A stretch of 46,400 bases of DNA from the NCBI GenBank assembly GCA_001643675.2, contig LSRY02000082.1, forward strand, positions 1-46,400. Reading direction: 5' to 3'. Under the pieces are notes generated by a model. The model was not told where the DNA came from. It saw nothing but the letters and a program-made list of their open reading frames with translations, and ran no database searches. Below, piece after piece: positions 15,801-41,214 of the stretch (the stretch's first letter is position 1; the number at the start of each line of letters is the position of its first letter). Position numbers and translations under genes: made by a program. The stretch comes from Monocercomonoides exilis PA203 (Eukaryota > Protista > Preaxostyla).

Positions 15801-18800
15801 CTGATAAAGAAGGAAAAATGACTGAAAAAGGGGGTCATTCAGATAGACTGAAAAAATGAAAATATTTTTTTAAAAAGAAAGAATGACCAGACAACAAAAA
15901 GAATGTGTGTTTGGGAGGTGTTATGACAAAAGTTAAAAAAGAAAAATAAAAACAAATTGCACCTTTCAAAACCTCGGATCGTCAATTCTGAGCAAAATCG
16001 ATAGATTTTGCCTGCCAACACAAAAAATAAAAATTTAAAAAATTGCATAAAAATAACTTACAAACCGAATTGAATGCGAGTTGCTGCGCAACGTGTAACA
16101 ATTGGCGACACACACATATCGCTCGCCTCCACCCCAAATGCTCACCCCTTTTCTGATAAAGAAGGAAAAAATGACTGAAAAAGGGGGTCATTCAGATAGA
16201 CTGAAAAAATGAAAATATTTTTTTAAAAAGAAAGAATGACCAGACAACAAAAAGAATGTGTGTTTGGGAGGTGTTATGACAAAAGTTAAAAAAGAAAAAT
16301 AAAAACAAATTGCACCTTTCAAAACCTCGGATCGTCAATTCTGAGCAAAATCGATAGATTTTGCCTGCCAACACAAAAATAAAAATTTAAAAAATTGCAT
16401 AAAAATAACTTACAAACCGAATTGAATGCGAGTTGCTGCGCAACGTGTAACAATTGGCGACACACACATATCGCTCGCCTCCACCCCAAATGCTCACCCC
16501 TTTTCTGATAAAGAAGGAAAAATGACTGAAAAAGGGGGTCATTCAGATAGACTGAAAAATGAAAATATTTTTTTAAAAAGAAAGAATGACCAGACAACAA
16601 AAAGAATGTGTGTTTGGGAGGTGTTATGACAAAAGTTAAAAAAGAAAAATAAAAACAAATTGCACCTTTCAAAACCTCGGATCGTCAATTCTGAGCAAAA
16701 TCGATAGATTTTGCCTGCCAACACAAAAATAAAAATTTAAAAAATTGCATAAAAATAACTTACAAACCGAATTGAATGCGAGTTGCTGCGCAACGTGTAA
16801 CAATTGGCGACACACACATATCGCTCGCCTCCACCCCAAATGCTCACCCCTTTTCTGATAAAGAAGGAAAAAATGACTGAAAAAGGGGGTCATTCAGATA
16901 GACTGAAAAAATGAAAATATTTTTTTAAAAAAGAAAGAATGACCAGACAACAAAAAGAATGTGTGTTTGGGAGGTGTTATGACAAAAGTTAAAAAAGAAA
17001 AATAAAAACAAATTGCACCTTTCAAAACCTCGGATCGTCAATTCTGAGCAAAATCGATAGATTTTGCCTGCCAACACAAAAATAAAAATTTAAAAAAATT
17101 GCATAAAAATAACTTACAAACCGAATTGAATGCGAGTTGCTGCGCAACGTGTAACAATTGGCGACACACACATATCGCTCGCCTCCACCCCAAATGCTCA
17201 CCCCTTTTCTGATAAAGAAGGAAAAATGACTGAAAAAGGGGTCATTCAGATAGACTGAAAAATGAAAATATTTTTTTAAAAAAGAAAGAATGACCAGACA
17301 ACAAAAAGAATGTGTGTTTGGGAGGTGTTATGACAAAAGTTAAAAAAGAAAAATAAAAACAAATTGCACCTTTCAAAACCTCGGATCGTTAATTCTGAGC
17401 AAAATCGATAGATTTTGCCTGCCAACACAAAAAAATAAAAATTTAAAAAATTGCATAAAAATAACTTACAAACCGAATTGAATGCGAGTTGCTGCGCAAC
17501 GTGTAACAATTGGCGACACACACATATCGCTCGCCTCCACCCCAAATGCTCACCCCTTTTCTGATAAAGAAGGAAAAATGACTGAAAAAGGGGGTCATTC
17601 AGATAGACTGAAAAATGAAAATATTTTTTTAAAAAGAAAGAATGACCAGACAACAAAAAGAATGTGTGTTTGGGAGGTGTTATGACAAAAGTTAAAAAAG
17701 AAAAATAAAAACAAATTGCACCTTTCAAAACCTCGGATCGTCAATTCTGAGCAAAATCGATAGATTTTGCCTGCCAACACAAAAATAAAAATTTAAAAAA
17801 TTGCATAAAAATAACTTACAAACCGAATTGAATGCGAGTTGCTGCGCAACGTGTAACAATTGGCGACACACACATATCGCTCGCCTCCACCCCAAATGCT
17901 CACCCCTTTTCTGATAAAGAAGGAAAAATGACTGAAAAAGGGGGTCATTCAGATAGACTGAAAAATGAAAATATTTTTTTAAAAAGAAAGAATGACCAGA
18001 CAACAAAAAGAATGTGTGTTTGGGAGGTGTTATGACAAAAGTTAAAAAAGAAAAATAAAAACAAATTGCACCTTTCAAAACCTCGGATCGTCGAATTCTG
18101 AGCAAAATCGATAGATTTTGCCTGCCAACACAAAAAAATAAAAATTTAAAAAATTGCATAAAAATAACTTACAAACCGAATTGAATGCGAGTTGCTGCGC
18201 AACGTGTAACAATTGGCGACACACACATATCGCTCGCCTCCACCCCAAATGCTCACCCCTTTTCTGATAAAGAAGGAAAAATGACTGAAAAAGGGGGTCA
18301 TTCAGATAGACTGAAAAAATGAAAATATTTTTTTAAAAAGAAAGAATGACCAGACAACAAAAAGAATGTGTGTTTGGGAGGTGTTATGACAAAAGTTAAA
18401 AAAGAAAAATAAAAACAAATTGCACCTTTCAAAACCTCGGATCGTCAATTCTGAGCAAAATCGATAGATTTTGCCTGCCAACACAAAAAATAAAAATTTA
18501 AAAAATTGCATAAAAATAACTTACAAACCGAATTGAATGCGAGTTGCTGCGCAACGTGTAACAATTGGCGACACACACATATCGCTCGCCTCCACCCCCA
18601 AATGCTCACCCCTTTTCTGATAAAGAAGGAAAAAATGACTGAAAAAGGGGTCATTCAGATAGACTGAAAAATGAAAATATTTTTTTAAAAAAGAAAGAAT
18701 GACCAGACAACAAAAAGAATGTGTGTTTGGGAGGTGTTATGACAAAAGTTAAAAAAGAAAAATAAAAACAAATTGCACCTTTCAAAACCTCGGATCGTCA

Positions 18801-21800
18801 ATTCTGAGCAAAATCGATAGATTTTGCCTGCCAACACAAAAAATAAAAATTTAAAAAATTGCATAAAAATAACTTACAAACCGAATTGAATGCGAGTTGC
18901 TGCGCAACGTGTAACAATTGGCGACACACACATATCGCTCGCCTCCACCCCAAATGCTCACCCCTTTTCTGATAAAGAAGGAAAAAATGACTGAAAAAGG
19001 GGGTCATTCAGATAGACTGAAAAATGAAAATATTTTTTTAAAAAGAAAGAATGACCAGACAACAAAAAGAATGTGTGTTTGGGAGGTGTTATGACAAAAG
19101 TTAAAAAAGAAAAATAAAAACAAATTGCACCTTTCAAAACCTCGGATCGTCAATTCTGAGCAAAATCGATAGATTTTGCCTGCCAACACAAAAAAATAAA
19201 AATTTAAAAAAATTGCATAAAAATAACTTACAAACCGAATTGAATGCGAGTTGCTGCGCAACGTGTAACAATTGGCGACACACACATATCGCTCGCCTCC
19301 ACCCCAAATGCTCACCCCTTTTCTGATAAAGAAGGAAAAATGACTGAAAAAGGGGTCATTCAGATAGACTGAAAAATGAAAATATTTTTTTAAAAAGAAA
19401 GAATGACCAGACAACAAAAAGAATGTGTGTTTGGGAGGTGTTATGACAAAAGTTAAAAAAGAAAAATAAAAACAAATTGCACCTTTCAAAACCTCGGATC
19501 GTTAATTCTGAGCAAAATCGATAGATTTTGCCTGCCAACACAAAAAAATAAAAATTTAAAAAATTGCATAAAAATAACTTACAAACCGAATTGAATGCGA
19601 GTTGCTGCGCAACGTGTAACAATTGGCGACACACACATATCGCTCGCCTCCACCCCAAATGCTCACCCCTTTTCTGATAAAGAAGGAAAAAATGACTGAA
19701 AAAGGGGGTCATTCAGATAGACTGAAAAAATGAAAATATTTTTTTAAAAAAGAAAGAATGACCAGACAACAAAAAGAATGTGTGTTTGGGAGGTGTTATG
19801 ACAAAAGTTAAAAAAGAAAAATAAAAACAAATTGCACCTTTCAAAACCTCGGATCGTCGACATTCTGAGCAAAATCGATAGATTTTGCCTGCCAACACAA
19901 AAATAAAAATTTAAAAAATTGCATAAAAATAACTTACAAACCGAATTGAATGCGAGTTGCTGCGCAACGTGTAACAATTGGCGACACACACATATCGCTC
20001 GCCTCCACCCCAAATGCTCACCCCTTTTCTGATAAAGAAGGAAAAATGACTGAAAAAGGGGGTCATTCAGATAGACTGAAAAATGAAAATATTTTTTTAA
20101 AAAAGAAAGAATGACCAGACAACAAAAAGAATGTGTGTTTGGGAGGTGTTATGACAAAAGTTAAAAAAGAAAAATAAAAACAAATTGCACCTTTCAAAAC
20201 CTCGGATCGTCAATTCTGAGCAAAATCGATAGATTTTGCCTGCCAACACAAAAAATAAAAATTTAAAAAATTGCATAAAAATAACTTACAAACCGAATTG
20301 AATGCGAGTTGCTGCGCAACGTGTAACAATTGGCGACACACACATATCGCTCGCCTCCACCCCAAATGCTCACCCCTTTTCTGATAAAGAAGGAAAAATG
20401 ACTGAAAAAGGGGGTCATTCAGATAGACTGAAAAATGAAAATATTTTTTTAAAAAGAAAGAATGACCAGACAACAAAAAGAATGTGTGTTTGGGAGGTGT
20501 TATGACAAAAGTTAAAAAAGAAAAATAAAAACAAATTGCACCTTTCAAAACCTCGGATCGTTAATTCTGAGCAAAATCGATAGATTTTGCCTGCCAACAC
20601 AAAAAATAAAAATTTAAAAAATTGCATAAAAATAACTTACAAACCGAATTGAATGCGAGTTGCTGCGCAACGTGTAACAATTGGCGACACACACATATCG
20701 CTCGCCTCCACCCCAAATGCTCACCCCTTTTCTGATAAAGAAGGAAAAAATGACTGAAAAAGGGGGTCATTCAGATAGACTGAAAAAATGAAAATATTTT
20801 TTTAAAAAGAAAGAATGACCAGACAACAAAAAGAATGTGTGTTTGGGAGGTGTTATGACAAAAGTTAAAAAAGAAAAATAAAAACAAATTGCACCTTTCA
20901 AAACCTCGGATCGTCAATTCTGAGCAAAATCGATAGATTTTGCCTGCCAACACAAAAAATAAAAATTTAAAAAATTGCATAAAAATAACTTACAAACCGA
21001 ATTGAATGCGAGTTGCTGCGCAACGTGTAACAATTGGCGACACACACATATCGCTCGCCTCCACCCCAAATGCTCACCCCTTTTCTGATAAAGAAGGAAA
21101 AATGACTGAAAAAGGGGGTCATTCAGATAGACTGAAAAAATGAAAATATTTTTTTAAAAAGAAAGAATGACCAGACAACAAAAAGAATGTGTGTTTGGGA
21201 GGTGTTATGACAAAAGTTAAAAAAGAAAAATAAAAACAAATTGCACCTTTCAAAACCTCGGATCGTCAATTCTGAGCAAAATCGATAGATTTTGCCTGCC
21301 AACACAAAAATAAAAATTTAAAAAATTGCATAAAAATAACTTACAAACCGAATTGAATGCGAGTTGCTGCGCAACGTGTAACAATTGGCGACACACACAT
21401 ATCGCTCGCCTCCACCCCAAATGCTCACCCCTTTTCTGATAAAGAAGGAAAAATGACTGAAAAAGGGGGTCATTCAGATAGACTGAAAAATGAAAATATT
21501 TTTTTAAAAAAGAAAGAATGACCAGACAACAAAAAGAATGTGTGTTTGGGAGGTGTTATGACAAAAGTTAAAAAAGAAAAATAAAAACAAATTGCACCTT
21601 TCAAAACCTCGGATCGTCAATTCTGAGCAAAATCGATAGATTTTGCCTGCCAACACAAAAAATAAAAATTTAAAAAATTGCATAAAAATAACTTACAAAC
21701 CGAATTGAATGCGAGTTGCTGCGCAACGTGTAACAATTGGCGACACACACATATCGCTCGCCTCCACCCCAAATGCTCACCCCTTTTCTGATAAAGAAGG

Positions 21801-24800
21801 AAAAATGACTGAAAAAGGGGGTCATTCAGATAGACTGAAAAAATGAAAATATTTTTTTAAAAAGAAAGAATGACCAGACAACAAAAAGAATGTGTGTTTG
21901 GGAGGTGTTATGACAAAAGTTAAAAAAGAAAAATAAAAACAAATTGCACCTTTCAAAACCTCGGATCGTCAATTCTGAGCAAAATCGATAGATTTTGCCT
22001 GCCAACACAAAAAATAAAAATTTAAAAAATTGCATAAAAATAACTTACAAACCGAATTGAATGCGAGTTGCTGCGCAACGTGTAACAATTGGCGACACAC
22101 ACATATCGCTCGCCTCCACCCCAAATGCTCACCCCTTTTCTGATAAAGAAGGAAAAATGACTGAAAAAGGGGGTCATTCAGATAGACTGAAAAATGAAAA
22201 TATTTTTTTAAAAAAGAAAGAATGACCAGACAACAAAAAGAATGTGTGTTTGGGAGGTGTTATGACAAAAGTTAAAAAAGAAAAATAAAAACAAATTGCA
22301 CCTTTCAAAACCTCGGATCGTTAATTCTGAGCAAAATCGATAGATTTTGCCTGCCAACACAAAAAAATAAAAATTTAAAAAATTGCATAAAAATAACTTA
22401 CAAACCGAATTGAATGCGAGTTGCTGCGCAACGTGTAACAATTGGCGACACACACATATCGCTCGCCTCCACCCCAAATGCTCACCCCTTTTCTGATAAA
22501 GAAGGAAAAATGACTGAAAAAGGGGGTCATTCAGATAGACTGAAAAATGAAAATATTTTTTTAAAAAGAAAGAATGACCAGACAACAAAAAGAATGTGTG
22601 TTTGGGAGGTGTTATGACAAAAGTTAAAAAAGAAAAATAAAAACAAATTGCACCTTTCAAAACCTCGGATCGTCAATTCTGAGCAAAATCGATAGATTTT
22701 GCCTGCCAACACAAAAAAATAAAAATTTAAAAAATTGCATAAAAATAACTTACAAACCGAATTGAATGCGAGTTGCTGCGCAACGTGTAACAATTGGCGA
22801 CACACACATATCGCTCGCCTCCACCCCAAATGCTCACCCCTTTTCTGATAAAGAAGGAAAAATGACTGAAAAAGGGGGTCATTCAGATAGACTGAAAAAA
22901 TGAAAATATTTTTTTAAAAAGAAAGAATGACCAGACAACAAAAAGAATGTGTGTTTGGGAGGTGTTATGACAAAAGTTAAAAAAGAAAAATAAAAACAAA
23001 TTGCACCTTTCAAAACCTCGGATCGTCAATTCTGAGCAAAATCGATAGATTTTGCCTGCCAACACAAAAAAATAAAAATTTAAAAAATTGCATAAAAATA
23101 ACTTACAAACCGAATTGAATGCGAGTTGCTGCGCAACGTGTAACAATTGGCGACACACACATATCGCTCGCCTCCACCCCAAATGCTCACCCCTTTTCTG
23201 ATAAAGAAGGAAAAATGACTGAAAAAGGGGGTCATTCAGATAGACTGAAAAATGAAAATATTTTTTTAAAAAAGAAAGAATGACCAGACAACAAAAAGAA
23301 TGTGTGTTTGGGAGGTGTTATGACAAAAGTTAAAAAAGAAAAATAAAAACAAATTGCACCTTTCAAAACCTCGGATCGTCAATTCTGAGCAAAATCGATA
23401 GATTTTGCCTGCCAACACAAAAAATAAAAATTTAAAAAATTGCATAAAAATAACTTACAAACCGAATTGAATGCGAGTTGCTGCGCAACGTGTAACAATT
23501 GGCGACACACACATATCGCTCGCCTCCACCCCAAATGCTCACCCCTTTTCTGATAAAGAAGGAAAAATGACTGAAAAAGGGGGTCATTCAGATAGACTGA
23601 AAAAATGAAAATATTTTTTTAAAAAAGAAAGAATGACCAGACAACAAAAAGAATGTGTGTTTGGGAGGTGTTATGACAAAAGTTAAAAAAGAAAAATAAA
23701 AACAAATTGCACCTTTCAAAACCTCGGATCGTCAATTCTGAGCAAAATCGATAGATTTTGCCTGCCAACACAAAAAAAAATAAAAATTTAAAAAATTGCA
23801 TAAAAATAACTTACAAACCGAATTGAATGCGAGTTGCTGCGCAACGTGTAACAATTGGCGACACACACATATCGCTCGCCTCCACCCCAAATGCTCACCC
23901 CTTTTCTGATAAAGAAGGAAAAATGACTGAAAAAGGGGGTCATTCAGATAGACTGAAAAATGAAAATATTTTTTTAAAAAAGAAAGAATGACCAGACAAC
24001 AAAAAGAATGTGTGTTTGGGAGGTGTTATGACAAAAGTTAAAAAAGAAAAATAAAAACAAATTGCACCTTTCAAAACCTCGGATCGTCAATTCTGAGCAA
24101 AATCGATAGATTTTGCCTGCCAACACAAAAAAAAATAAAAATTTAAAAAATTGCATAAAAATAACTTACAAACCGAATTGAATGCGAGTTGCTGCGCAAC
24201 GTGTAACAATTGGCGACACACACATATCGCTCGCCTCCACCCCAAATGCTCACCCCTTTTCTGATAAAGAAGGAAAAAATGACTGAAAAAGGGGGTCATT
24301 CAGATAGACTGAAAAAATGAAAATATTTTTTTAAAAAGAAAGAATGACCAGACAACAAAAAGAATGTGTGTTTGGGAGGTGTTATGACAAAAGTTAAAAA
24401 AGAAAAATAAAAACAAATTGCACCTTTCAAAACCTCGGATCGTCGAATTCTGAGCAAAATCGATAGATTTTGCCTGCCAACACAAAAAATAAAAATTTAA
24501 AAAATTGCATAAAAATAACTTACAAACCGAATTGAATGCGAGTTGCTGCGCAACGTGTAACAATTGGCGACACACACATATCGCTCGCCTCCACCCCAAA
24601 TGCTCACCCCTTTTCTGATAAAGAAGGAAAAATGACTGAAAAAGGGGGTCATTCAGATAGACTGAAAAATGAAAATATTTTTTTAAAAAAGAAAGAATGA
24701 CCAGACAACAAAAAGAATGTGTGTTTGGGAGGTGTTATGACAAAAGTTAAAAAAGAAAAATAAAAACAAATTGCACCTTTCAAAACCTCGGATCGTCAAT

Positions 24801-27800
24801 TCTGAGCAAAATCGATAGATTTTGCCTGCCAACACAAAAAATAAAAATTTAAAAAATTGCATAAAAATAACTTACAAACCGAATTGAATGCGAGTTGCTG
24901 CGCAACGTGTAACAATTGGCGACACACACATATCGCTCGCCTCCACCCCAAATGCTCACCCCTTTTCTGATAAAGAAGGAAAAATGACTGAAAAAGGGGG
25001 TCATTCAGATAGACTGAAAAAATGAAAATATTTTTTTAAAAAGAAAGAATGACCAGACAACAAAAAGAATGTGTGTTTGGGAGGTGTTATGACAAAAGTT
25101 AAAAAAGAAAAATAAAAACAAATTGCACCTTTCAAAACCTCGGATCGTTAATTCTGAGCAAAATCGATAGATTTTGCCTGCCAACACAAAAAAAAATAAA
25201 AATTTAAAAAATTGCATAAAAATAACTTACAAACCGAATTGAATGCGAGTTGCTGCGCAACGTGTAACAATTGGCGACACACACATATCGCTCGCCTCCA
25301 CCCCAAATGCTCACCCCTTTTCTGATAAAGAAGGAAAAAATGACTGAAAAAGGGGGTCATTCAGATAGACTGAAAAATGAAAATATTTTTTTAAAAAGAA
25401 AGAATGACCAGACAACAAAAAGAATGTGTGTTTGGGAGGTGTTATGACAAAAGTTAAAAAAGAAAAATAAAAACAAATTGCACCTTTCAAAACCTCGGAT
25501 CGTCGAATTCTGAGCAAAATCGATAGATTTTGCCTGCCAACACAAAAAATAAAAATTTAAAAAATTGCATAAAAATAACTTACAAACCGAATTGAATGCG
25601 AGTTGCTGCGCAACGTGTAACAATTGGCGACACACACATATCGCTCGCCTCCACCCCAAATGCTCACCCCTTTTCTGATAAAGAAGGAAAAATGACTGAA
25701 AAAGGGGGTCATTCAGATAGACTGAAAAAATGAAAATATTTTTTTAAAAAGAAAGAATGACCAGACAACAAAAAGAATGTGTGTTTGGGAGGTGTTATGA
25801 CAAAAGTTAAAAAAGAAAAATAAAAACAAATTGCACCTTTCAAAACCTCGGATCGTTAATTCTGGAGCAAAATCGATAGATTTTGCCTGCCAACACAAAA
25901 AATAAAAATTTAAAAAATTGCATAAAAATAACTTACAAACCGAATTGAATGCGAGTTGCTGCGCAACGTGTAACAATTGGCGACACACACATATCGCTCG
26001 CCTCCACCCCAAATGCTCACCCCTTTTCTGATAAAGAAGGAAAAATGACTGAAAAAGGGGGTCATTCAGATAGACTGAAAAAATGAAAATATTTTTTTAA
26101 AAAAGAAAGAATGACCAGACAACAAAAAGAATGTGTGTTTGGGAGGTGTTATGACAAAAGTTAAAAAAGAAAAATAAAAACAAATTGCACCTTTCAAAAC
26201 CTCGGATCGTTAATTCTGAGCAAAATCGATAGATTTTGCCTGCCAACACAAAAAAATAAAAATTTAAAAAATTGCATAAAAATAACTTACAAACCGAATT
26301 GAATGCGAGTTGCTGCGCAACGTGTAACAATTGGCGACACACACATATCGCTCGCCTCCACCCCAAATGCTCACCCCTTTTCTGATAAAGAAGGAAAAAT
26401 GACTGAAAAAGGGGGTCATTCAGATAGACTGAAAAAATGAAAATATTTTTTTAAAAAAGAAAGAATGACCAGACAACAAAAAGAATGTGTGTTTGGGAGG
26501 TGTTATGACAAAAGTTAAAAAAGAAAAATAAAAACAAATTGCACCTTTCAAAACCTCGGATCGTCAATTCTGAGCAAAATCGATAGATTTTGCCTGCCAA
26601 CACAAAAAATAAAAATTTAAAAAATTGCATAAAAATAACTTACAAACCGAATTGAATGCGAGTTGCTGCGCAACGTGTAACAATTGGCGACACACACATA
26701 TCGCTCGCCTCCACCCCAAATGCTCACCCCTTTTCTGATAAAGAAGGAAAAAATGACTGAAAAAGGGGGTCATTCAGATAGACTGAAAAAATGAAAATAT
26801 TTTTTTAAAAAGAAAGAATGACCAGACAACAAAAAGAATGTGTGTTTGGGAGGTGTTATGACAAAAGTTAAAAAAGAAAAATAAAAACAAATTGCACCTT
26901 TCAAAACCTCGGATCGTCAATTCTGAGCAAAATCGATAGATTTTGCCTGCCAACACAAAAAAAATAAAAATTTAAAAAATTGCATAAAAATAACTTACAA
27001 ACCGAATTGAATGCGAGTTGCTGCGCAACGTGTAACAATTGGCGACACACACATATCGCTCGCCTCCACCCCAAATGCTCACCCCTTTTCTGATAAAGAA
27101 GGAAAAATGACTGAAAAAGGGGGTCATTCAGATAGACTGAAAAATGAAAATATTTTTTTAAAAAAGAAAGAATGACCAGACAACAAAAAGAATGTGTGTT
27201 TGGGAGGTGTTATGACAAAAGTTAAAAAAGAAAAATAAAAACAAATTGCACCTTTCAAAACCTCGGATCGTCAATTCTGAGCAAAATCGATAGATTTTGC
27301 CTGCCAACACAAAAAATAAAAATTTAAAAAATTGCATAAAAATAACTTACAAACCGAATTGAATGCGAGTTGCTGCGCAACGTGTAACAATTGGCGACAC
27401 ACACATATCGCTCGCCTCCACCCCAAATGCTCACCCCTTTTCTGATAAAGAAGGAAAAATGACTGAAAAAGGGGGTCATTCAGATAGACTGAAAAAATGA
27501 AAATATTTTTTTAAAAAGAAAGAATGACCAGACAACAAAAAGAATGTGTGTTTGGGAGGTGTTATGACAAAAGTTAAAAAGAAAAATAAAAACAAATTGC
27601 ACCTTTCAAAACCTCGGATCGTTAATTCTGAGCAAAATCGATAGATTTTGCCTGCCAACACAAAAAATAAAAATTTAAAAAATTGCATAAAAATAACTTA
27701 CAAACCGAATTGAATGCGAGTTGCTGCGCAACGTGTAACAATTGGCGACACACACATATCGCTCGCCTCCACCCCAAATGCTCACCCCTTTTCTGATAAA

Positions 27801-30800
27801 GAAGGAAAAAATGACTGAAAAAGGGGGTCATTCAGATAGACTGAAAAAATGAAAATATTTTTTTAAAAAAGAAAGAATGACCAGACAACAAAAAGAATGT
27901 GTGTTTGGGAGGTGTTATGACAAAAGTTAAAAAAGAAAAATAAAAACAAATTGCACCTTTCAAAACCTCGGATCGTTAATTCTGAGCAAAATCGATAGAT
28001 TTTGCCTGCCAACACAAAAAAATAAAAATTTAAAAAATTGCATAAAAATAACTTACAAACCGAATTGAATGCGAGTTGCTGCGCAACGTGTAACAATTGG
28101 CGACACACACATATCGCTCGCCTCCACCCCAAATGCTCACCCCTTTTCTGATAAAGAAGGAAAAAATGACTGAAAAAGGGGGTCATTCAGATAGACTGAA
28201 AAAATGAAAATATTTTTTTAAAAAGAAAGAATGACCAGACAACAAAAAGAATGTGTGTTTGGGAGGTGTTATGACAAAAGTTAAAAAAGAAAAATAAAAA
28301 CAAATTGCACCTTTCAAAACCTCGGATCGTTAATTCTGAGCAAAATCGATAGATTTTGCCTGCCAACACAAAAAATAAAAATTTAAAAAATTGCATAAAA
28401 ATAACTTACAAACCGAATTGAATGCGAGTTGCTGCGCAACGTGTAACAATTGGCGACACACACATATCGCTCGCCTCCACCCCAAATGCTCACCCCTTTT
28501 CTGATAAAGAAGGAAAAAATGACTGAAAAAGGGGGTCATTCAGATAGACTGAAAAAATGAAAATATTTTTTTAAAAAAGAAAGAATGACCAGACAACAAA
28601 AAGAATGTGTGTTTGGGAGGTGTTATGACAAAAGTTAAAAAAGAAAAATAAAAACAAATTGCACCTTTCAAAACCTCGGATCGTCAATTCTGAGCAAAAT
28701 CGATAGATTTTGCCTGCCAACACAAAAAAAAATAAAAATTTAAAAAATTGCATAAAAATAACTTACAAACCGAATTGAATGCGAGTTGCTGCGCAACGTG
28801 TAACAATTGGCGACACACACATATCGCTCGCCTCCACCCCAAATGCTCACCCCTTTTCTGATAAAGAAGGAAAAATGACTGAAAAAGGGGTCATTCAGAT
28901 AGACTGAAAAAATGAAAATATTTTTTTAAAAAGAAAGAATGACCAGACAACAAAAAGAATGTGTGTTTGGGAGGTGTTATGACAAAAGTTAAAAAAGAAA
29001 AATAAAAACAAATTGCACCTTTCAAAACCTCGGATCGTTAATTCTGAGCAAAATCGATAGATTTTGCCTGCCAACACAAAAAATAAAAATTTAAAAAATT
29101 GCATAAAAATAACTTACAAACCGAATTGAATGCGAGTTGCTGCGCAACGTGTAACAATTGGCGACACACACATATCGCTCGCCTCCACCCCAAATGCTCA
29201 CCCCTTTTCTGATAAAGAAGGAAAAAATGACTGAAAAAGGGGGTCATTCAGATAGACTGAAAAAATGAAAATATTTTTTTAAAAAGAAAGAATGACCAGA
29301 CAACAAAAAGAATGTGTGTTTGGGAGGTGTTATGACAAAAGTTAAAAAAGAAAAATAAAAACAAATTGCACCTTTCAAAACCTCGGATCGTCAATTCTGA
29401 GCAAAATCGATAGATTTTGCCTGCCAACACAAAAAAATAAAAATTTAAAAAATTGCATAAAAATAACTTACAAACCGAATTGAATGCGAGTTGCTGCGCA
29501 ACGTGTAACAATTGGCGACACACACATATCGCTCGCCTCCACCCCAAATGCTCACCCCTTTTCTGATAAAGAAGGAAAAAATGACTGAAAAAGGGGGTCA
29601 TTCAGATAGACTGAAAAAATGAAAATATTTTTTTTAAAAAAGAAAGAATGACCAGACAACAAAAAGAATGTGTGTTTGGGAGGTGTTATGACAAAAGTTA
29701 AAAAAGAAAAATAAAAACAAATTGCACCTTTCAAAACCTCGGATCGTCAATTCTGAGCAAAATCGATAGATTTTGCCTGCCAACACAAAAAAATAAAAAT
29801 TTAAAAAAATTGCATAAAAATAACTTACAAACCGAATTGAATGCGAGTTGCTGCGCAACGTGTAACAATTGGCGACACACACATATCGCTCGCCTCCACC
29901 CCAAATGCTCACCCCTTTTCTGATAAAGAAGGAAAAATGACTGAAAAGGGGGTCATTCAGATAGACTGAAAAAATGAAAATATTTTTTTAAAAAAGAAAG
30001 AATGACCAGACAACAAAAAGAATGTGTGTTTGGGAGGTGTTATGACAAAAGTTAAAAAAGAAAAATAAAAACAAATTGCACCTTTCAAAACCTCGGATCG
30101 TTAATTCTGAGCAAAATCGATAGATTTTGCCTGCCAACACAAAAAATAAAAATTTAAAAAATTGCATAAAAATAACTTACAAACCGAATTGAATGCGAGT
30201 TGCTGCGCAACGTGTAACAATTGGCGACACACACATATCGCTCGCCTCCACCCCAAATGCTCACCCCTTTTCTGATAAAGAAGGAAAAATGACTGAAAAA
30301 GGGGGTCATTCAGATAGACTGAAAAATGAAAATATTTTTTTAAAAAAGAAAGAATGACCAGACAACAAAAAGAATGTGTGTTTGGGAGGTGTTATGACAA
30401 AAGTTAAAAAAGAAAAATAAAAACAAATTGCACCTTTCAAAACCTCGGATCGTCAATTCTGAGCAAAATCGATAGATTTTGCCTGCCAACACAAAAAAAT
30501 AAAAATTTAAAAAAATTGCATAAAAATAACTTACAAACCGAATTGAATGCGAGTTGCTGCGCAACGTGTAACAATTGGCGACACACACATATCGCTCGCC
30601 TCCACCCCAAATGCTCACCCCTTTTCTGATAAAGAAGGAAAAAATGACTGAAAAAGGGGGTCATTCAGATAGACTGAAAAAATGAAAATATTTTTTTTAA
30701 AAAAAGAAAGAATGACCAGACAACAAAAAGAATGTGTGTTTGGGAGGTGTTATGACAAAAGTTAAAAAAGAAAAATAAAAACAAATTGCACCTTTCAAAA

Positions 30801-33800
30801 CCTCGGATCGTCGAATTCTGAGCAAAATCGATAGATTTTGCCTGCCAACACAAAAAATAAAAATTTAAAAAAATTGCATAAAAATAACTTACAAACCGAA
30901 TTGAATGCGAGTTGCTGCGCAACGTGTAACAATTGGCGACACACACATATCGCTCGCCTCCACCCCAAATGCTCACCCCTTTTCTGATAAAGAAGGAAAA
31001 ATGACTGAAAAAGGGGGTCATTCAGATAGACTGAAAAATGAAAATATTTTTTTAAAAAAGAAAGAATGACCAGACAACAAAAAGAATGTGTGTTTGGGAG
31101 GTGTTATGACAAAAGTTAAAAAAGAAAAATAAAAACAAATTGCACCTTTCAAAACCTCGGATCGTCAATTCTGAGCAAAATCGATAGATTTTGCCTGCCA
31201 ACACAAAAAAAAATAAAAATTTAAAAAATTGCATAAAAATAACTTACAAACCGAATTGAATGCGAGTTGCTGCGCAACGTGTAACAATTGGCGACACACA
31301 CATATCGCTCGCCTCCACCCCAAATGCTCACCCCTTTTCTGATAAAGAAGGAAAAATGACTGAAAAAGGGGGTCATTCAGATAGACTGAAAAAATGAAAA
31401 TATTTTTTTAAAAAGAAAGAATGACCAGACAACAAAAAGAATGTGTGTTTGGGAGGTGTTATGACAAAAGTTAAAAAAGAAAAATAAAAACAAATTGCAC
31501 CTTTCAAAACCTCGGATCGTCAATTCTGAGCAAAATCGATAGATTTTGCCTGCCAACACAAAAAATAAAAATTTAAAAAATTGCATAAAAATAACTTACA
31601 AACCGAATTGAATGCGAGTTGCTGCGCAACGTGTAACAATTGGCGACACACACATATCGCTCGCCTCCACCCCAAATGCTCACCCCTTTTCTGATAAAGA
31701 AGGAAAAATGACTGAAAAAGGGGGTCATTCAGATAGACTGAAAAAATGAAAATATTTTTTTAAAAAGAAAGAATGACCAGACAACAAAAAGAATGTGTGT
31801 TTGGGAGGTGTTATGACAAAAGTTAAAAAAGAAAAATAAAAACAAATTGCACCTTTCAAAACCTCGGATCGTCAATTCTGAGCAAAATCGATAGATTTTG
31901 CCTGCCAACACAAAAAATAAAAATTTAAAAAATTGCATAAAAATAACTTACAAACCGAATTGAATGCGAGTTGCTGCGCAACGTGTAACAATTGGCGACA
32001 CACACATATCGCTCGCCTCCACCCCAAATGCTCACCCCTTTTCTGATAAAGAAGGAAAAATGACTGAAAAAGGGGGTCATTCAGATAGACTGAAAAATGA
32101 AAATATTTTTTTTTAAAAAAAGAAAGAATGACCAGACAACAAAAAGAATGTGTGTTTGGGAGGTGTTATGACAAAAGTTAAAAAAGAAAAATAAAAACAA
32201 ATTGCACCTTTCAAAACCTCGGATCGTCAATTCTGAGCAAAATCGATAGATTTTGCCTGCCAACACAAAAAATAAAAATTTAAAAAATTGCATAAAAATA
32301 ACTTACAAACCGAATTGAATGCGAGTTGCTGCGCAACGTGTAACAATTGGCGACACACACATATCGCTCGCCTCCACCCCAAATGCTCACCCCTTTTCTG
32401 ATAAAGAAGGAAAAATGACTGAAAAAGGGGGTCATTCAGATAGACTGAAAAAATGAAAATATTTTTTTAAAAAAGAAAGAATGACCAGACAACAAAAAGA
32501 ATGTGTGTTTGGGAGGTGTTATGACAAAAGTTAAAAAAGAAAAATAAAAACAAATTGCACCTTTCAAAACCTCGGATCGTCAATTCTGAGCAAAATCGAT
32601 AGATTTTGCCTGCCAACACAAAAAATAAAAATTTAAAAAATTGCATAAAAATAACTTACAAACCGAATTGAATGCGAGTTGCTGCGCAACGTGTAACAAT
32701 TGGCGACACACACATATCGCTCGCCTCCACCCCAAATGCTCACCCCTTTTCTGATAAAGAAGGAAAAATGACTGAAAAAGGGGGTCATTCAGATAGACTG
32801 AAAAAATGAAAATATTTTTTTAAAAAAGAAAGAATGACCAGACAACAAAAAGAATGTGTGTTTGGGAGGTGTTATGACAAAAGTTAAAAAAGAAAAATAA
32901 AAACAAATTGCACCTTTCAAAACCTCGGATCGTCAATTCTGAGCAAAATCGATAGATTTTGCCTGCCAACACAAAAAATAAAAATTTAAAAAATTGCATA
33001 AAAATAACTTACAAACCGAATTGAATGCGAATTGCTGCGCAACGTGTAACAATTGGCGACACACACATATCGCTCGCCTCCACCCCAAATGCTCACCCCT
33101 TTTCTGATAAAGAAGGAAAAAATGACTGAAAAAGGGGGTCATTCAGATAGACTGAAAAATGAAAATATTTTTTTAAAAAAGAAAGAATGACCAGACAACA
33201 AAAAGAATGTGTGTTTGGGAGGTGTTATGACAAAAGTTAAAAAAGAAAAATAAAAACAAATTGCACCTTTCAAAACCTCGGATCGTCAATTCTGAGCAAA
33301 ATCGATAGATTTTGCCTGCCAACACAAAAAATAAAAATTTAAAAAAATTGCATAAAAATAACTTACAAACCGAATTGAATGCGAGTTGCTGCGCAACGTG
33401 TAACAATTGGCGACACACACATATCGCTCGCCTCCACCCCAAATGCTCACCCCTTTTCTGATAAAGAAGGAAAAATGACTGAAAAAGGGGGTCATTCAGA
33501 TAGACTGAAAAATGAAAATATTTTTTTAAAAAAGAAAGAATGACCAGACAACAAAAAGAATGTGTGTTTGGGAGGTGTTATGACAAAAGTTAAAAAAGAA
33601 AAATAAAAACAAATTGCACCTTTCAAAACCTCGGATCGTCGAATTCTGAGCAAAATCGATAGATTTTGCCTGCCAACACAAAAAATAAAAATTTAAAAAA
33701 TTGCATAAAAATAACTTACAAACCGAATTGAATGCGAGTTGCTGCGCAACGTGTAACAATTGGCGACACACACATATCGCTCGCCTCCACCCCAAATGCT

Positions 33801-34173
33801 CACCCCTTTTCTGATAAAGAAGGAAAAAATGACTGAAAAAGGGGGTCATTCAGATAGACTGAAAAATGAAAATATTTTTTTAAAAAAGAAAGAATGACCA
33901 GACAACAAAAAGAATGTGTGTTTGGGAGGTGTTATGACAAAAGTTAAAAAAGAAAAATAAAAACAAATTGCACCTTTCAAAACCTCGGATCGTTAATTCT
34001 GAGCAAAATCGATAGATTTTGCCTGCCAACACAAAAAATAAAAATTTAAAAAATTGCATAAAAATAACTTACAAACCGAATTGAATGCGAATTGCTGCGC
34101 AACGTGTAACAATTGGCGACACACACATATCGCTCGCCTCCACCCCAAATACTCACCCCTTTTTTCTGATAAA
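3871..34173. repeat. Subtelomeric tandem satellite, ~352-357-bp unit, ~85-86 copies
   Basis: The marker cctcggatcg recurs from 3901 to ~33983 at ~354-bp spacing. Copies differ almost only in homopolymer length, plus a gtcaatt/gttaatt dimorphism. Confidence 0.99.
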
Positions 34174-34208: not shown

Positions 34209-35229
34209 GACGTTCGCATTTTGGATGTCGGACTCGCGCAGAGCGTAAAATGAAGTTTCTTATCGTGATCTTTGTTAATATTTGATTACAGCTGTTTAAT
34301 CATTTTCAATGATCTTTTGTATTATATTTGTATGCTTTCTAAATGATCAAAAAATTTATTTTTCACATATTGAAATTTCAATCTATTAATAAATGAAATT
34401 ATTTTTTTAAGTATATCTCACAGTTAAGTGCTAAATATCAATGTCAAATTTTCATAAATATCTACTTATTGAAATATTTACACATTTTTATTTTTCTAAA
34501 TTGTTCATATTTGTGGAAATTTTATTTGTTATACAATAATTCACTTATTTATTTTGTTTGAGTTTACGCAAAAATTTTTTTTATTCCAATCTGGTTAATT
34601 ACGAAGTGTCTTTTTCAACAACTTTCATTCATTTTCAATACATAAATCAACGAAAAATGTCACCTAATAATGATGTGAAGTCAGATAGAAAAAAAAATTT
34701 AACGATTAAAAATTGAATTTTTAACATAGAAAAATGGTTATGATCTAGATCAAACATTTTTTTTAAAAAATTTATATTTAATAAAGAAGAAGGAATTAGT
34801 GGTTGATGAAAAGTTACGTATATGGGTAATAATATGAGAGGAATTGATTGATATTAAAATCAGAAATTAATTGATTCAAATTGTGGAATGATATGTTAAA
34901 TAAAATTTTTTCTGTCAAAATTTTCATAATTATTTTTAAAATATCTCGATAAATAAATTTTTCTAAGCCGTGAGACTTTACCAGAGTGTTAGTTGGACTA
35001 TTTGTGAATTTTTGAAGTCAGGGTCAAAAATTCGAAAAATGAGAAATTTTCATTTTTTCTGATTAAGTTGAATTTAGCTCAAGTTATTCATAAAAATAGA
35101 AAAATTGGTGAAAATCGGTTTTTATGAAAGTTGTGATCGAAACTTATGAAAACACAAAAAGTTCGGATAATTCGCGAATAGTCCGCTGAATTTTTTTTTC
35201 GGGCCAGATTGGTCTGGTTAGAGAGAAAA

Positions 35230-36080
35230 TGTCATAAGAATATTTTAACTGAAAAAGTGGTGATCTTAGATCAAGGACCGAAAAATATGGGGTCTCAGAT
35301 TCCTTTGATAATTGGCAGGTGGCAAGGACGTGGGCCCCTTATAAACATACTCGAATCTAAATTTTTTCTGTCGAGCGGTTGTGGCAGGGCAGTGCGGACA
35401 AGTTGGCCATTTTGACTGAAAAAATGAAAAAAATATTTTTTTTCTCGAAAATTTCAAAGTCGATATAAAATACGATTAAGCACATGAATACGACTTCTAA
35501 TGTTGTATATTGACGATTTTTTGTTGGATACACTTATTTGTAGTTTTTGAGTTTTAATCGAATTTTTGAGTGAAAATGTTCATTTTTGAGGTAAATCGAG
35601 TATAACTCCAGAAGTAACAGCCAGATAAATTTGAAATTAATATATGATATATGTGCATATAGTGCGGTAAGAGCATGCATATGGGTGTTGGTGGTGGGGG
35701 TCTGGCAGGCGGTGCAGAAAAGAAATATATTTTTCATAGTGACTGGGGGTGCTTGGTTAGTGAGGTCACAGAGAGTGAACCAGGGGCAAGTGGCTGAATC
35801 GAAACACATATGACCGGCACAGTAACCCATGCCCGGATGTGGCCAAACGGCGTTTCGATCGGCCCAGTGGTTGCTGAGAAATCCGATCGGCTAGTTGTTT
35901 TGAGTTCGGTTCTGATTTTTCACATAGAAAAATGACTTGGGGGTATTGACTTGGTGATGCTGTGGAGTGTGAGAGGAGGGCAAGTGATCGGAGTTAGAGG
36001 GATATGTTGGGGAATGTTAGTGGAGGTAGGATGTGGTGCAATTACTAAGAGATTGGGTCAGCGGATATTCCTCCACACAT
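35230..36080. repeat. G/T-rich, relatively GC-rich non-coding block with diverged internal repeats and satellite-related motifs
   Basis: gactgaaaaaatgaaaaaaatatttttt (~35414) and actgaaaaagtggtga (~35248) match satellite motifs. catag..tgact(t)gggggt...aggggcaagtg occurs at ~35735-35792 and ~35923-35985. gatcggc..agt.gtt..tgag occurs twice (~35857, ~35885). Confidence 0.55.
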
Positions 36081-36259
36081 CAATCAGTATAATTACTATT
36101 TGAAAATTGAATTTTTTCTTTTATAATTTTTTTGAAAAATTTATTGCAATGTTAAACCTGCCATTCAACTTTTTATTGCATTGCTTATCATATTATTAAA
36201 CAAACTTTATTACTGCAACATAAAAATCCACTTTCGATAAATTGCAAATAAATAATATT

Positions 36260-38471: not shown

Positions 38472-41214
38472 TCAATTTCCAGAACGTCTTTTCAATTTCT
38501 TCTCTTTGCAATTAACAACAGAAGAAGATGATGTTTTCTTTGACAACTCTTCAAGCGACTTCTTTTTCTTTGTGAACGAGTCCGATTTATTTCTGTAACT
38601 TGCACGGATTAACTCATCAGCAGCATTCAGATCTTCATCTTCGTCATCAACTATGCTTATCGTTAAATCATTGTTCATCTGCTCATTATCGCAACACACT
38701 TCTTCTTCGTTTCTATCATCTTCATCGTCTTCTCTGCTGTCTTCGCATTTGATTTCCTTCCATTCACTTGAATCCGAGCAACTTTCAGAATCATCAACAT
38801 CTTCGGATTCACTTGACTCATTTCTTTGTAAACTGCAGTCATTCGCATCATCCTTTATGACTTTTATTGCGTGAGTATTATTTTCCTTGGCATCGTTCTC
38901 ATCCTCGTCATCATGTATTATTTTCAAACAATGCAACACTTCGTCCCTGGAATATTCTGGGTGCCTTCGCCACTGCTTCTTTTGCAAGTTTCGCCAACGA
39001 TCTTTAAGATCCTGACCACTTCTTCCATCGAATTGAAGCGACATGTCGCACCATCTCATTTTTTGCTGCTTACACCTTCTGAGCAGCTCATCTTCTTCCT
39101 TTGTGAAGAATCTTCTTTTCTTTTGCTTCTTTTTCACCTTTATGGCATTGGAACTTGTGGAATTTTTGTTGTTCATAAGTAATCTATTTGGAAGTTGATA
39201 CGGGTTGTCTGATATAACTTCAACAGATGATGGTGAAGAAGAAGAACTTGAAGTTGCACTGCTGGAAGATTGTGTTGAAGATGATGATGTGCATTCTTGG
39301 TTTGATTGTTTTCCTTCTCCATCTGAGTTCGTGTTTGTGGATTCGCTCCCTTCAGTGTTTTCGCTTTGACCCTGTGACTCTTCATCGGATTGTTGAATTG
39401 AGAGATCATTTTCATTTGAAGATGATGTGCAGTTGGATGATGCTTCTTGAGGGAAACTGCCTTTTAAATCTAGACTGCGTCTCACAGGATAATCACTTAG
39501 ATTAACAAAATCATCAACCAAATTGTCAAGATTAGCTAATGATTTTGACAATTTACAAACCACGTCTTGTCGAATGATTTTCATTCTTATCGTGTGAAAG
39601 TCATTTTCCTTCAAAGCTCTAAAAAGAAGACTTTTCTTTTTGGTGAATGCACGCTTTGCTCTCAAGGAAAGGTTTTCGTTCTTGTCGATATAAGCTTTAG
39701 CACATTTCTTCCATTGGTTTCGAATTTCCCTTTCACCATCTTCCAAGTGCTTCATTGCATCATTGAAATGATCATTCACTGCATTTCTAAATGTCTGAAA
39801 TTGTTCTTTGATTGTTCTTTTTGGGTCTGACAACTTGATACTATGATATGCAGCGATAGAAGTTAGAGCCAGATCTATTACAGTATCTCCAGGCTTGGGA
39901 TTCACTAATCTGGAGCATACCGTTATTTTCTTGGAGGTATTTCTGACGTAAGTTAACTGAGCCCTGCCAAATGGGACCCAGTCAGCGACGTAAGCAGTGT
40001 GTTCAAGTATCCCTCTTAACTTTTCTTCATCTGTTCCGGCTACCATAATTGCAGTACAGATGAAGCCTGCCCTTAAGGAGTGAAAAGAAAAGAGTTTACA
40101 AGGGTACCCTGCTTGCTCTGATCTTTTTCTGAACCTTAAGGACATTGCTGCTGGGCTCATGTCCCACAGCTTTTTCGACAACACATTCTTCGGCCACTTT
40201 TGTCTCGTTTTCAAAGATAGATGGTGGTTAACCTGCAAATGACGCTCAAGCCAATAAACAGGATCTCTGACTTGTTCATGTAAGCTGGTATGAGCAAATC
40301 TTCCTTCGATCGTTACAGAGTGGTTAGAGTTTGGATGTCCCTTCAGCCTTCTCAATCTGATTTCAACCAAGATGCACTCAGCGTGTAAATCCGAAATTGT
40401 TACGTTTTTAACATCCTCTAAAAAACGTTTGCACATGTAATTGACCTAGCTCCGCAGTGAACAGCAAATAGAAAAAGAGAACAATCAAAATCAAAAACAT
40501 ATTACCAGAATTGCTTCTTTCAATGATAAGGGCTACATCGTCAAGCAGTGCCGCTTCTTTTCCTTCTCCTTCCCTTTTGTAGCATCCGCTTTTTCTGACA
40601 GAAGAAAAAGCAGATCGAATTGTTAATTTAAGCTCACTGGAAAAGTCGAATTCTTTCGTTTGTTGAAGATGTTGTGATTTTAAAGATGGAATGACAACAT
40701 TTTCAACACTTTTAATAGAATATAAACATTCAATGCAGAGAAATTGAATGAATGAAGAGATTGTTGATGATTGTATTGGAAAAGGTTGGCTTTTAAGCAA
40801 TTTCGCATATGGAACGTAAAGTTTTTCAGCCCATTTATATTTGCGATGGAGAGAAGGAGATAGAATTGTAACTTGTTGAGAATAACGTTGTAATGTAAGC
40901 GGTTTGCTTTTTTAAGGTTTTTGTAATTTTGTCTCCTTTTTGTTGCTATCCCGCATTCAGCAAAAAACTCATCCCAGTTTGAAGGCATTTCGAAATATGG
41001 TTTGTCCAATTCTTCAGCTTCTTTATCTTTTTCAAATATCCCAAAAAAATATAAATTAACAAAAATGAAATCAACAAGATAAATATGCAAACATAAATAT
41101 AAAAAAACCTTCAAAATGATTGCTTTCAACCTGTTTCAAGTTGTCTAACTTCTTGGTTCGAATATTAAACAGCAAATGTTTTGATCGAGGTTGTCGAAAA
41201 TTTAAATTTGACAT
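38472..41214 (-). CDS. Tyrosine recombinase (Cre/Crypton/DIRS-YR-like) fused to a C-terminal telobox-type Myb domain; frameshifted as assembled
   Basis: The 654-aa ORF contains RRLKG (K), FSFHSLRAGF (HxxR) and ADWVPFGRAQLTY (W..Y). Adding one base in each of three homopolymers (~40420-40425, ~40493-40497, ~40908-40913) joins upstream frames: ...RKYKWAEKLYVPYAKLLKSQPFPIQSSTISSFIQFL (core-binding-like)...SLFLFAVHCGARSITCANVFLEDVK (box I Arg). The 5' end is tentative: ATG at 41214, a 35-codon exon and a GT-AG intron at 41108-41027. Confidence 0.85.
38976..39116 (-). other. Single Myb/SANT repeat with telobox signature inside the recombinase ORF
   Basis: RRFFTKEEDELLRRCKQQKMRWCDMSLQFDGRSGQDLKDRWRNLQKK. 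Helix 3 DLKDRWRNL matches the TRF1/TRF2/plant TRB-TRFL consensus (V-D/M-LKD-K/R-WR-N/T). The domain is flanked by Ser-rich and acidic low-complexity linkers. Confidence 0.85.

Follow-up and report, generated by a model that had tools for sequence, protein, structure and literature searches.

Crypton DNA transposons were reportedly described by Goodwin et al. in 2003. Yeast Y' elements and fungal telomere-linked helicase genes are directly subtelomeric coding units that are spread by homologous recombination. Here we analyse a stretch of 46,400 nucleotides from the oxymonad protist Monocercomonoides exilis PA203 (contig LSRY02000082.1, positions 1 to 46,400, hereafter the window), which is contig C83 of the Oxford Nanopore (ONT) assembly of 82.3 Mb in 101 contigs, and which carries in its subtelomere a gene for a tyrosine recombinase (YR) fused to a single Myb repeat. 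On balance it seems fairly likely that this locus is one of five near-identical subtelomeric copies belonging to a large Crypton-like YR-Myb family that lacks reverse transcriptase (RT) and is tied to telomeric DNA.

The Crypton groups distinguished by Kojima and Jurka (2011) have a GCR1_C domain, a conserved C-terminal region or a C48 protease, and none of them has a Myb domain (PMC3212892). DNA elements encoding a YR are rare in eukaryotes and only CryptonF-1 in Chlamydomonas has been seen moving; a model in which a short sequence at the element junction recombines with the same sequence at the target fitted the first Cryptons seen to move (PMC9977147). TATE of Leishmania is a YR retroelement that forms tandem clusters at telomeres and whose insertion point in the telomeric hexamer is fixed (PMC6681497). 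In Starships, a MYB/SANT gene is often found opposite the captain YR (DUF3435), some genes are DUF3435/MYB hybrids, and the Myb part has been suggested to recruit the recombinase to the element ends, while in PIF/Harbinger elements a separate Myb/SANT protein is needed together with the catalytic protein for nuclear import and end binding (PMC12256816). A fungal telomere-linked helicase family is mentioned in PMC4522978. No description of the YR-Myb family was found in the literature searched, and two M. exilis genome papers, one of them PMC8767320, make no mention of recombinases, Cryptons or Myb proteins. The earlier note on this DNA had stated that no fusion of a YR with a telobox Myb was known. 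The family is indeed undescribed in that literature, but two precedents had been missed, namely TATE (PMC6681497) and the Starship DUF3435/MYB hybrids (PMC12256816).

A family of YR-Myb units at chromosome ends

A six-frame search of the M. exilis genome produced 70 matches to the family (68 scored of 291 candidates), which were grouped into at least 63 loci. Forty-seven of the 63 lie no more than 60 kb from a contig end, two are internal and 14 are without placement. Under a uniform distribution 14.7% would be expected within 60 kb, giving a binomial P of 2e-26 with all 14 unplaced loci counted as internal. Since eight of the unplaced loci are within 18 kb of a 14-mer that is otherwise found in or beside telomere arrays, at least 55 of the 63 loci are near a contig end or telomere-type sequence, and the enrichment of homologues at chromosome ends that the earlier note had led us to expect was borne out rather than a random distribution. 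The units are ~3.5-5.6 kb in length with one gene each, encoding a protein of ~830-1000 aa, and all the M. exilis family gene models looked up are labelled uncharacterized or hypothetical protein. Several copies contain 1-7 stop codons, as decaying elements do.

More than 15 paralogues have a continuous frame of 830-1000 aa in which the N-terminal domain, the YR and the Myb repeat follow one another, and every full-length paralogue has one C-terminal Myb repeat after a basic stretch. The fusion that had been recognized at this one locus is therefore the architecture of the whole family and no accident of the locus. No unit read has RT or RNase H, and among the family proteins scanned none gave an RT Pfam hit; the term Crypton-like therefore fits better than DIRS. 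The family also extends beyond this genome. An exhaustive profile search of a library of 1.84 billion proteins returned 871 clusters at E<=1e-3 and 228 at E<=1e-30, of which the named clusters looked up were M. exilis 'uncharacterized' proteins and the rest came from ENA, JGI and Logan assemblies. Several of the relatives from outside M. exilis have Myb Pfam hits.

At their start, the units of three M. exilis lineages and of four distinct metagenome relatives have 2-8 telomere repeats, upstream of the gene. A 5' border that is sharp, and the same in different flanks, is seen in three lineages. The metagenome copies L058 and L061, which have different flanks, both start at exactly (TTAGGG)3; the copies on contigs C41 and C72 are 100% identical from (TTAGGG)2 onwards, with upstream flanks that differ; and the copies of the unit on C52, C1 and C27 are likewise common from the telomere repeats on, again with different flanks upstream. 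For other lineages the repeats are just seen 240-400 bp upstream of the gene. At ten chromosome ends, representing three M. exilis lineages, the repeats are in the G-strand orientation 0.4-1.9 kb upstream and the gene points to the telomere. The chromosome ends L029, L037, L038 and L039 consist of an interstitial tract, one unit of ~4-5.6 kb and the terminal telomere.

Four of the seven distinct metagenome elements (L049, L050, L056/L058/L061 and L059) have 2-3 telomere-type repeats 240-400 bp upstream in the same orientation, those of L059 being TTTAGGG-type units. The contigs bearing these repeats differ widely in G+C (35-47%), and the L058 unit adjoins ordinary genes. A CCAAC motif is located three bases past the repeats in four of eight aligned 5' ends, including that of one M. 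exilis unit, the protein family of which shares only ~35-40% identity with those from the metagenomes. Direct repeats of 4-6 bp were absent from the termini at the borders examined, and a possible TTAG repeat at one metagenome copy was not repeated at a second copy. T-arm-like sequences beside L038 and L058 were considered as tRNA genes and rejected, as ARAGORN finds none.

Two further observations concern the metagenome contigs. In L056 (323-5252) and L062 a non-long-terminal-repeat (non-LTR) retrotransposon with endonuclease and RT lies 58 bp inside the YR-Myb unit; its poly(A) end abuts the (TTAGGG)3 of the unit in two contigs and the 58-bp stretch is repeated on both sides. The RT beside L056 is that of this inserted non-LTR element, which is separate from the unit. 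On L048, a TARA marine scaffold (3052-8079, protein P0088), distant YR relatives have a UCH-type ubiquitin hydrolase either fused to them or preceding them.

At the locus in the window, the subtelomeric setting that had been claimed is confirmed by a terminal (CCCTAA)n array followed by a long array of a 353-bp satellite (Table 1). Four further copies of the 4.5-kb gene region are found on contigs C85, C59, C43 and C31 with 99.5% identity, and a protein nearly identical to that of the gene carries the annotation 'uncharacterized protein MONOS_18087 [Monocercomonoides exilis]'. The gene has spread to these five ends within a larger block comprising the gene and the 353-bp satellite, which also flanks the C31 copy, and the proximal junction of the block is inside telomere repeats. 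This junction is an interstitial tract 1.83 kb upstream of the gene start, at which homology to C85, C59 and C31 stops. In the other four copies its length is 44-74 bp, and past the tract there are three different sequences, in C85/C59, in C31 and in C83/C43, respectively. In the window the tract has the appearance of an old chromosome end to which the gene, the 353-bp satellite and a new telomere have been joined, because the ~1.03-kb satellite beyond it begins near contig ends elsewhere (~3.5 kb from the contig start on C69 and C54, with arrays also on C52 and C17).

The recombinase and the Myb repeat

The identification of the protein as a tyrosine recombinase stands, on account of a complete R-K-H-R-W-Y set and a structural match to Cre. 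The catalytic residues R165, K200, H287, R290, W321 and Y331 (numbering of paralogue A1) are invariant in 21 paralogues that are 31-38% identical to the target. An AlphaFold2 (AF2) model built on the core alignment of these 21 paralogues, with a mean predicted local distance difference test (pLDDT) score of 85, has the two-domain fold of a helical core-binding domain and a catalytic domain. When this model was compared with the PDB using Foldseek, approximately thirty Cre structures came out on top, matching over both domains (~350 columns) with E values down to 9e-8, followed by the integron integrase IntI, XerH, XerA and lambda Int. By Pfam the family is barely visible, since PF00589 is matched by only two of the 21 members (best E 1.1e-6) and the target copy is without a match. 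No hit to PF11917 (DUF3435) was found at E<=1 in the 21 members. The Atlas structural look-alike of the YR core of one paralogue was a DUF3435 cluster (TM score 0.76 by query), and Pfam, Atlas and cluster names offered no named relative beyond generic YR space. In nine paralogue pairs, with dS (synonymous divergence) from 0.08 to 1.3, the ratio of nonsynonymous to synonymous substitution (dN/dS) was 0.14-0.29, and on this ratio the YR-Myb proteins are judged to be under purifying selection and functional.

The earlier note had also described one frame containing the catalytic Lys, the HSLR motif, the Trp and the Tyr and, after a Ser-rich linker, a Myb repeat ending in DLKDRWRNL. This frame is present as described (Table 1). 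The Myb repeat of the target falls just below the curated Pfam cut-offs (PF13921, 21.6 bits vs 22.9), and the AF2 model shows the region as a helical bundle with high confidence (pLDDT 88). With Foldseek the model retrieved a mix of c-Myb R3, Trichomonas Myb2, TRF1 (34% identity over 53 columns) and TRF2, the alignment extending over 52-53 columns for TRF1/2 and 43 for c-Myb.

The assignment of the repeat to the TRF/TRB telobox type was upheld for helix 3 and not for the domain as a whole. The target DLKDRWRNL matches the telobox helix-3 motif VDLKD(K/R)WR(N/T)(L/M), which most M. exilis paralogues do not have. At least eight relatives have [VI]DCKDR[WYF]R[NT][LI], and in many relatives outside M. 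exilis R[ST]N[VI]DCKDR[WYF]RN[LI] is found, which is the telobox motif with Cys for Leu. Among paralogues that are equally subtelomeric, helix 3 varies and can read DCRDRLRNL, HIDDHIQVL or HIMYHLKVL. Over the whole domain c-Myb outscores TRF, and plant telobox proteins score lowest. Searched alone against the PDB, the target repeat gave 27 bits with the Trichomonas MYB21 repeat, 19 with c-Myb R2, 18.5 with TRF1 and 14 with TRF2, and a profile of 30 family Myb repeats gave 43-45 bits with c-Myb R1-R3, 36-37 with TRF2, 31-36 with TRF1 and ~20 with the plant telobox proteins TRP/RTBP1. The Trp-Trp spacing before helix 3 is 19 in the target, as in c-Myb, and 21 in TRF1. Taken together, the single-sequence and profile searches of the PDB and the Foldseek comparison of the model gave no decisive separation of TRF from c-Myb. 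The nearest Myb domains in the genome are those of YR paralogues with helix 3 DC[SY]DRWRNI (37-42% identity); it follows that the domain has descended within the family instead of being acquired from a telomere protein. A pairing of the telobox helix 3 with telomere-repeat ends was considered and rejected, since L059 and L050 combine the repeats with a helix 3 of quite another sequence.

Competing explanations of the units and their borders

It is possible, and we put it forward only tentatively, that the YR-Myb units represent a new superfamily of eukaryotic DNA elements in which the 5' end is built from the host telomere repeat and which colonises chromosome ends by recombinase-catalysed exchange with TTAGGG tracts. 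In the reading that we favour, the recombinase, aided by the Myb repeat and/or the core-binding domain, would recombine the telomere-repeat end of the unit with telomeric or interstitial TTAGGG tracts, and in this way chromosome ends already in place would gain units on their distal side. From the arrangement of repeats and genes we infer that the recombinase acts on telomere repeats, and the Myb repeat may bind them. A fixed terminus at the repeats is the expected trace of a site-specific recombinase acting on a telomere-repeat site. Furthermore, a fixed terminus together with a telomere repeat of 12-18 bp, found in different flanks and at differing G+C, is hard to obtain by homology-driven copying alone. 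If they are such a superfamily, the units would be a DNA-level counterpart of TATE, HeT-A/TART and TRAS/SART, and would build or reshuffle much of the M. exilis subtelomeres.

A number of observations weigh against recombinase-catalysed spread. Interstitial telomere tracts at duplicon borders are typical of recombinase-free subtelomeres too. Many M. exilis units are without telomere repeats within 1.4-3 kb upstream, and the lineage L037/L029/L038 is inverted, its 5' end being capped directly by the terminal array (C-strand repeats). The target itself has five copies only, all within one larger duplicated block, which leaves its own 3' end undefined. None of the units examined revealed a transposition event, empty site, circular form or 3' terminus, and none of the 21 members had a hit at E<=1 to PF12012 (DUF3504) or PF12550 (GCR1_C). 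One apparent unit of 4.47 kb, defined by the pair L041/L043, had to be rejected since on its right side it stops where another dispersed repeat, present in 27 copies, comes to its end. At L043:5488-5900 (C38:13187-13599), next to one YR unit, lies the start of a dispersed repeat that has no relation to the YR family and of which at least 27 copies with 77-89% identity are found in chromosome interiors.

Several of the adverse observations are those expected if the family is Crypton-like and its Myb repeat serves as a generic accessory module for DNA binding or regulation, without telomeric affinity, as in PIF/Harbinger and Starships, with the units building up passively in subtelomeres. Subtelomeres would then be gene-poor safe havens with ectopic exchange, and the tracts would be relics of healed breaks and break-induced replication. 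We regard this explanation as rather unlikely. At the locus in the window the entire distal part moved as one 39-kb block, 30 kb of satellite included, and the tract length varies from 44 to 74 bp among the five copies, as predicted for ordinary homologous exchange in telomere repeats. The bases of many tracts start with a CTAGG-type motif, which resembles de novo telomere addition at a break. The family Myb profile, being nearer to c-Myb, SNAPC4 and Reb1 than to TRF or plant telobox proteins, and the wide variation of helix 3 among equally subtelomeric paralogues also favour a module without telomeric affinity. What passive build-up explains poorly is the precision of the borders in the other lineages, as tracts of 12-18 bp are too short for efficient homology copying and yet match a fixed terminus to the base in different flanks. 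The repeat number is constant (exactly three) in the metagenome element copies, one of which is beside ordinary genes, and 5' tracts recur on contigs of 35-47% G+C, being of TTTAGGG type on L059. For the junctions of the five target copies themselves, both the recombinase and ordinary recombination are candidate makers.

The earlier note had offered two alternatives, a telomere-specific Crypton-like element and a domesticated chromosome-end enzyme. The first is favoured by the telomere tracts at the unit starts, and domestication is ranked lower. It would mean that the YR-Myb genes are an immobile host gene family acting on chromosome ends, whether in subtelomere exchange, recombination-based telomere upkeep or the handling of ribosomal DNA, and spread by segmental duplication. 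The purifying selection acting even in close pairs (dN/dS 0.17 at dS 0.08), the low copy number per lineage (2-5), the terminal location and the ribosomal RNA (rRNA) gene 2.6 kb past the block would all suit such a family. We nevertheless consider domestication improbable, since there are decayed copies with 1-7 stop codons and dozens of deeply diverged lineages in one genome, and since the metagenome relatives, which are found beside ordinary genes, with a non-LTR insert or with a UCH protease, display the pattern of selfish elements. Moreover, the known domesticated Crypton genes have lost catalytic residues (PMC3212892), whereas all six are invariant here.

The state of the reading frame in the window has also to be explained. 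The earlier note had placed the box I Arg just upstream of the main frame, across one 1-nt frameshift. The CGAR motif is indeed upstream in another frame, but there are several breaks and not one. Compared with C59 and C31, the window copy has single-base deletions at 41108, 41050, 40937, 40498 and 40426 and a 3-base deletion at 40913; four of the five single-base deletions are in T runs and one is after an A run. A single frame of 533/534 aa in C59 and C31 takes in the N-terminal domain, CGAR and the full YR core, and in C83 and C85 the YR-to-Myb junction is in frame. The N-terminal half was accordingly studied in the C59 copy and the Myb junction in the window copy and in paralogues, rather than in a mended gene. 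An alignment of the five copies showed that they differ almost solely by one-base changes in the length of A/T runs, each being broken elsewhere, and when such indels are set aside they differ at ~15 columns in 4.5 kb, clustered at four sites. Since the copies break at different homopolymers, and since the M. exilis genome paper warns that ONT homopolymer errors needed correction (PMC8767320), the frameshifts before box I are most likely errors of the nanopore assembly and not a lesion. That the window copy is a dead pseudogene, with real frameshifts and no present function, is very improbable, for although no assembled copy of the five is free of frame breaks, these fall in homopolymers, vary by copy and are commonest in the two short contigs C83 and C85, in a gene region whose copies are otherwise so nearly identical.

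The locus in its subtelomere and its relation to known systems

The features of the window are collected in Table 1. In the block common to the five chromosome ends the YR-Myb gene is the sole clear coding sequence, and no further open frame of more than 170 aa was found there.

Table 1. Features of the window, with positions on the 46,400-nt stretch
Feature	Position	Strand	Basis or remark
Terminal telomere array (CCCTAA)n on the + strand, left chromosome end	1..3754	.	Tandem Repeats Finder (TRF), period 6, 631 copies; 3.75 kb
353-bp subtelomeric satellite, 85.6 copies	3871..34173	.	TRF score 58515, 98% matches
Unique block common to five chromosome ends (C83, C85, C59, C43, C31), 99.2-99.5% identity	34174..43044	.	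blastn extents
Main open frame, 654 aa: YR catalytic domain past box I, helical linker, Ser-rich linker, Myb repeat, acidic/Ser-rich tail, basic C-terminus	38472..40436	-	
Predicted fourth helix after the Myb repeat	38913-38957	-	
Single Myb/SANT repeat: basic N-terminal arm KKKQKKRR, three helices, helix 3 DLKDRWRNL	38973..39140	-	Weak Pfam PF13921/PF00249; AF2; Foldseek
Ser-rich low-complexity linker	39210..39440	-	
Tyr nucleophile, QLTYVRN	39939-39959	-	
Catalytic Trp, ADWVPF	39969-39986	-	
Catalytic His and Arg, HSLRAGF	40062-40085	-	
Catalytic Lys, RRLKGH	40335-40352	-	
N-terminal part of the gene: core-binding domain and box I Arg, split over three frames	40437..41214	-	Three-frame translation, five-copy alignment
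Box I, HCGARS with the catalytic Arg	40442..40459	-	Arg = R165 of paralogue A1
Interstitial telomere-repeat tract, 49 bp, oriented like the terminal array	43045..43093	.	Proximal border of the common block
Fragment of the ~1.03-kb subtelomeric satellite	43094..43400	.	Arrays on other chromosomes (C69, C54, C52, C17)
Large-subunit rRNA gene, 3' end	45673..46400	-	Rfam RF02543, 376.9 bits, model positions 2721-3401; contig ends inside the gene

Between the terminal array and the satellite there is a transition zone (3560-3900) of telomere repeats and pieces of the 353-bp satellite in alternation, which gives the impression of a satellite unit that was overwritten in part. The region 34854-36131 is richer in G+C (38%) with a strong GC skew and is 91% identical to a part of C5 near 52.5 kb (L031:5535-6801); no convincing reading frame was found in this region. 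The second subtelomeric satellite, of which there is only a broken piece in the window, has a period of ~1.03-1.05 kb and forms arrays at C69:3520-10881, C52:580745-588457 and C17:1327099-1337826 that are oriented with the telomere. The 3' end of the rRNA gene is located 2.6 kb past the interstitial tract, and the gene is transcribed towards the telomere. On C59, and by homology also on C85, a second, divergent YR-Myb paralogue begins ~0.5 kb past the interstitial tract (L022:8964-9899; C59:42663-43598); units are therefore stacked there with telomere repeats between them.

Two recurrent sequences were seen at telomere-repeat tracts. The first is the 14-mer TAACCTAGTTTGAA, which occurs 168 times genome-wide, the reversed control occurring 0 times, for example at C1:2710711-2712636 and C39:1744-4146. 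Among the 100 places listed, all but a few are near contig ends, in or beside telomere arrays and in the same orientation, often with several per telomere. At the inner edge of many tracts, terminal and interstitial alike, the bases are shortened versions of it (CCTAG..., CCTAGTTTGA...), as at 43086-43100 in the window. The 14-mer was considered as a recombination scar and set aside, since it is mostly inside or beside telomere arrays and in their orientation, and it may be a variant or initiation repeat made by telomerase. The second is a repeated segment that ends in ...GGTCTGCGCTAA(CCCTAA)2 and is joined to three different sequences (43400-44034; L045:4491-5129; L029; L023:9517), one of its junctions falling within the 3' end of a YR paralogue on C92. 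This segment is a further subtelomeric piece with a fixed telomere-repeat end.

The family offers hundreds of clusters, an intact active site, a fixed architecture and a candidate recognition site consisting of 2-3 telomere repeats with a short subterminal motif after them. Should telomeric DNA prove to be what the recombinase acts on, it would be a chromosome-end enzyme with site specificity, it would account for the exchange of subtelomeres among the 40-50 small chromosomes of M. exilis, and it would possibly provide a tool for targeting telomere-repeat tracts. In addition, part of the 35% 'unclassified repeats' of the M. exilis genome (PMC8767320) becomes a definable element family.

Among known proteins, Cre is the best structural match of the YR-Myb core over both domains and has the same R-K-H-R-W-Y site, but it is a phage protein with 13-15% identity and no Myb repeat. 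The likeness to TRF1, TRF2 and TRB lies in the target helix 3, in the [VI]DCKDRWR[NT]L of many relatives, in the basic arm before helix 1 and in the long helix 3, whereas the whole-domain scores of the family favour c-Myb and the Trp-Trp spacing of the target differs from that of TRF1 (19 vs 21). Unlike PIF/Harbinger, where two separate proteins are used and the catalytic one is a DDE transposase, the YR-Myb protein combines a YR and a Myb repeat in one chain. The Y' elements and telomere-linked helicase genes resemble the YR-Myb units in being coding units under the telomere that are common to many ends and have short telomere tracts between them; they encode helicases and not recombinases.

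The Starships share with the family a YR paired with or fused to a Myb/SANT domain, and the core of one paralogue resembles a DUF3435 cluster in structure. The YR-Myb units differ in having no PF11917 hit, in being small and single-gene without cargo, in their telomeric setting and in their host, which is a metamonad rather than a pezizomycete. TATE and other VIPER-like elements of kinetoplastids likewise encode a YR and are linked to telomere repeats, but TATE has RT and RNase H, whereas the YR-Myb units have neither and carry a Myb repeat. The family also resembles the Cryptons, in which the YR is likewise the sole enzyme, without RT, RNase H or terminal inverted repeats, in a long protein with a C-terminal DNA-binding module; the units measure 2.3-5.6 kb, and in some a cysteine protease is present (C48 in Cryptons, UCH in YR-Myb relatives). 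We claim no membership of a named Crypton group, and the family is set apart here by Pfam matches and description. The YR-Myb units have a Myb repeat in place of GCR1_C, no DUF3504 match and no 4-6-bp terminal direct repeats at the borders examined, and they are distinguished also by a 5' terminus that consists of telomere repeats and by a location that is almost exclusively subtelomeric.

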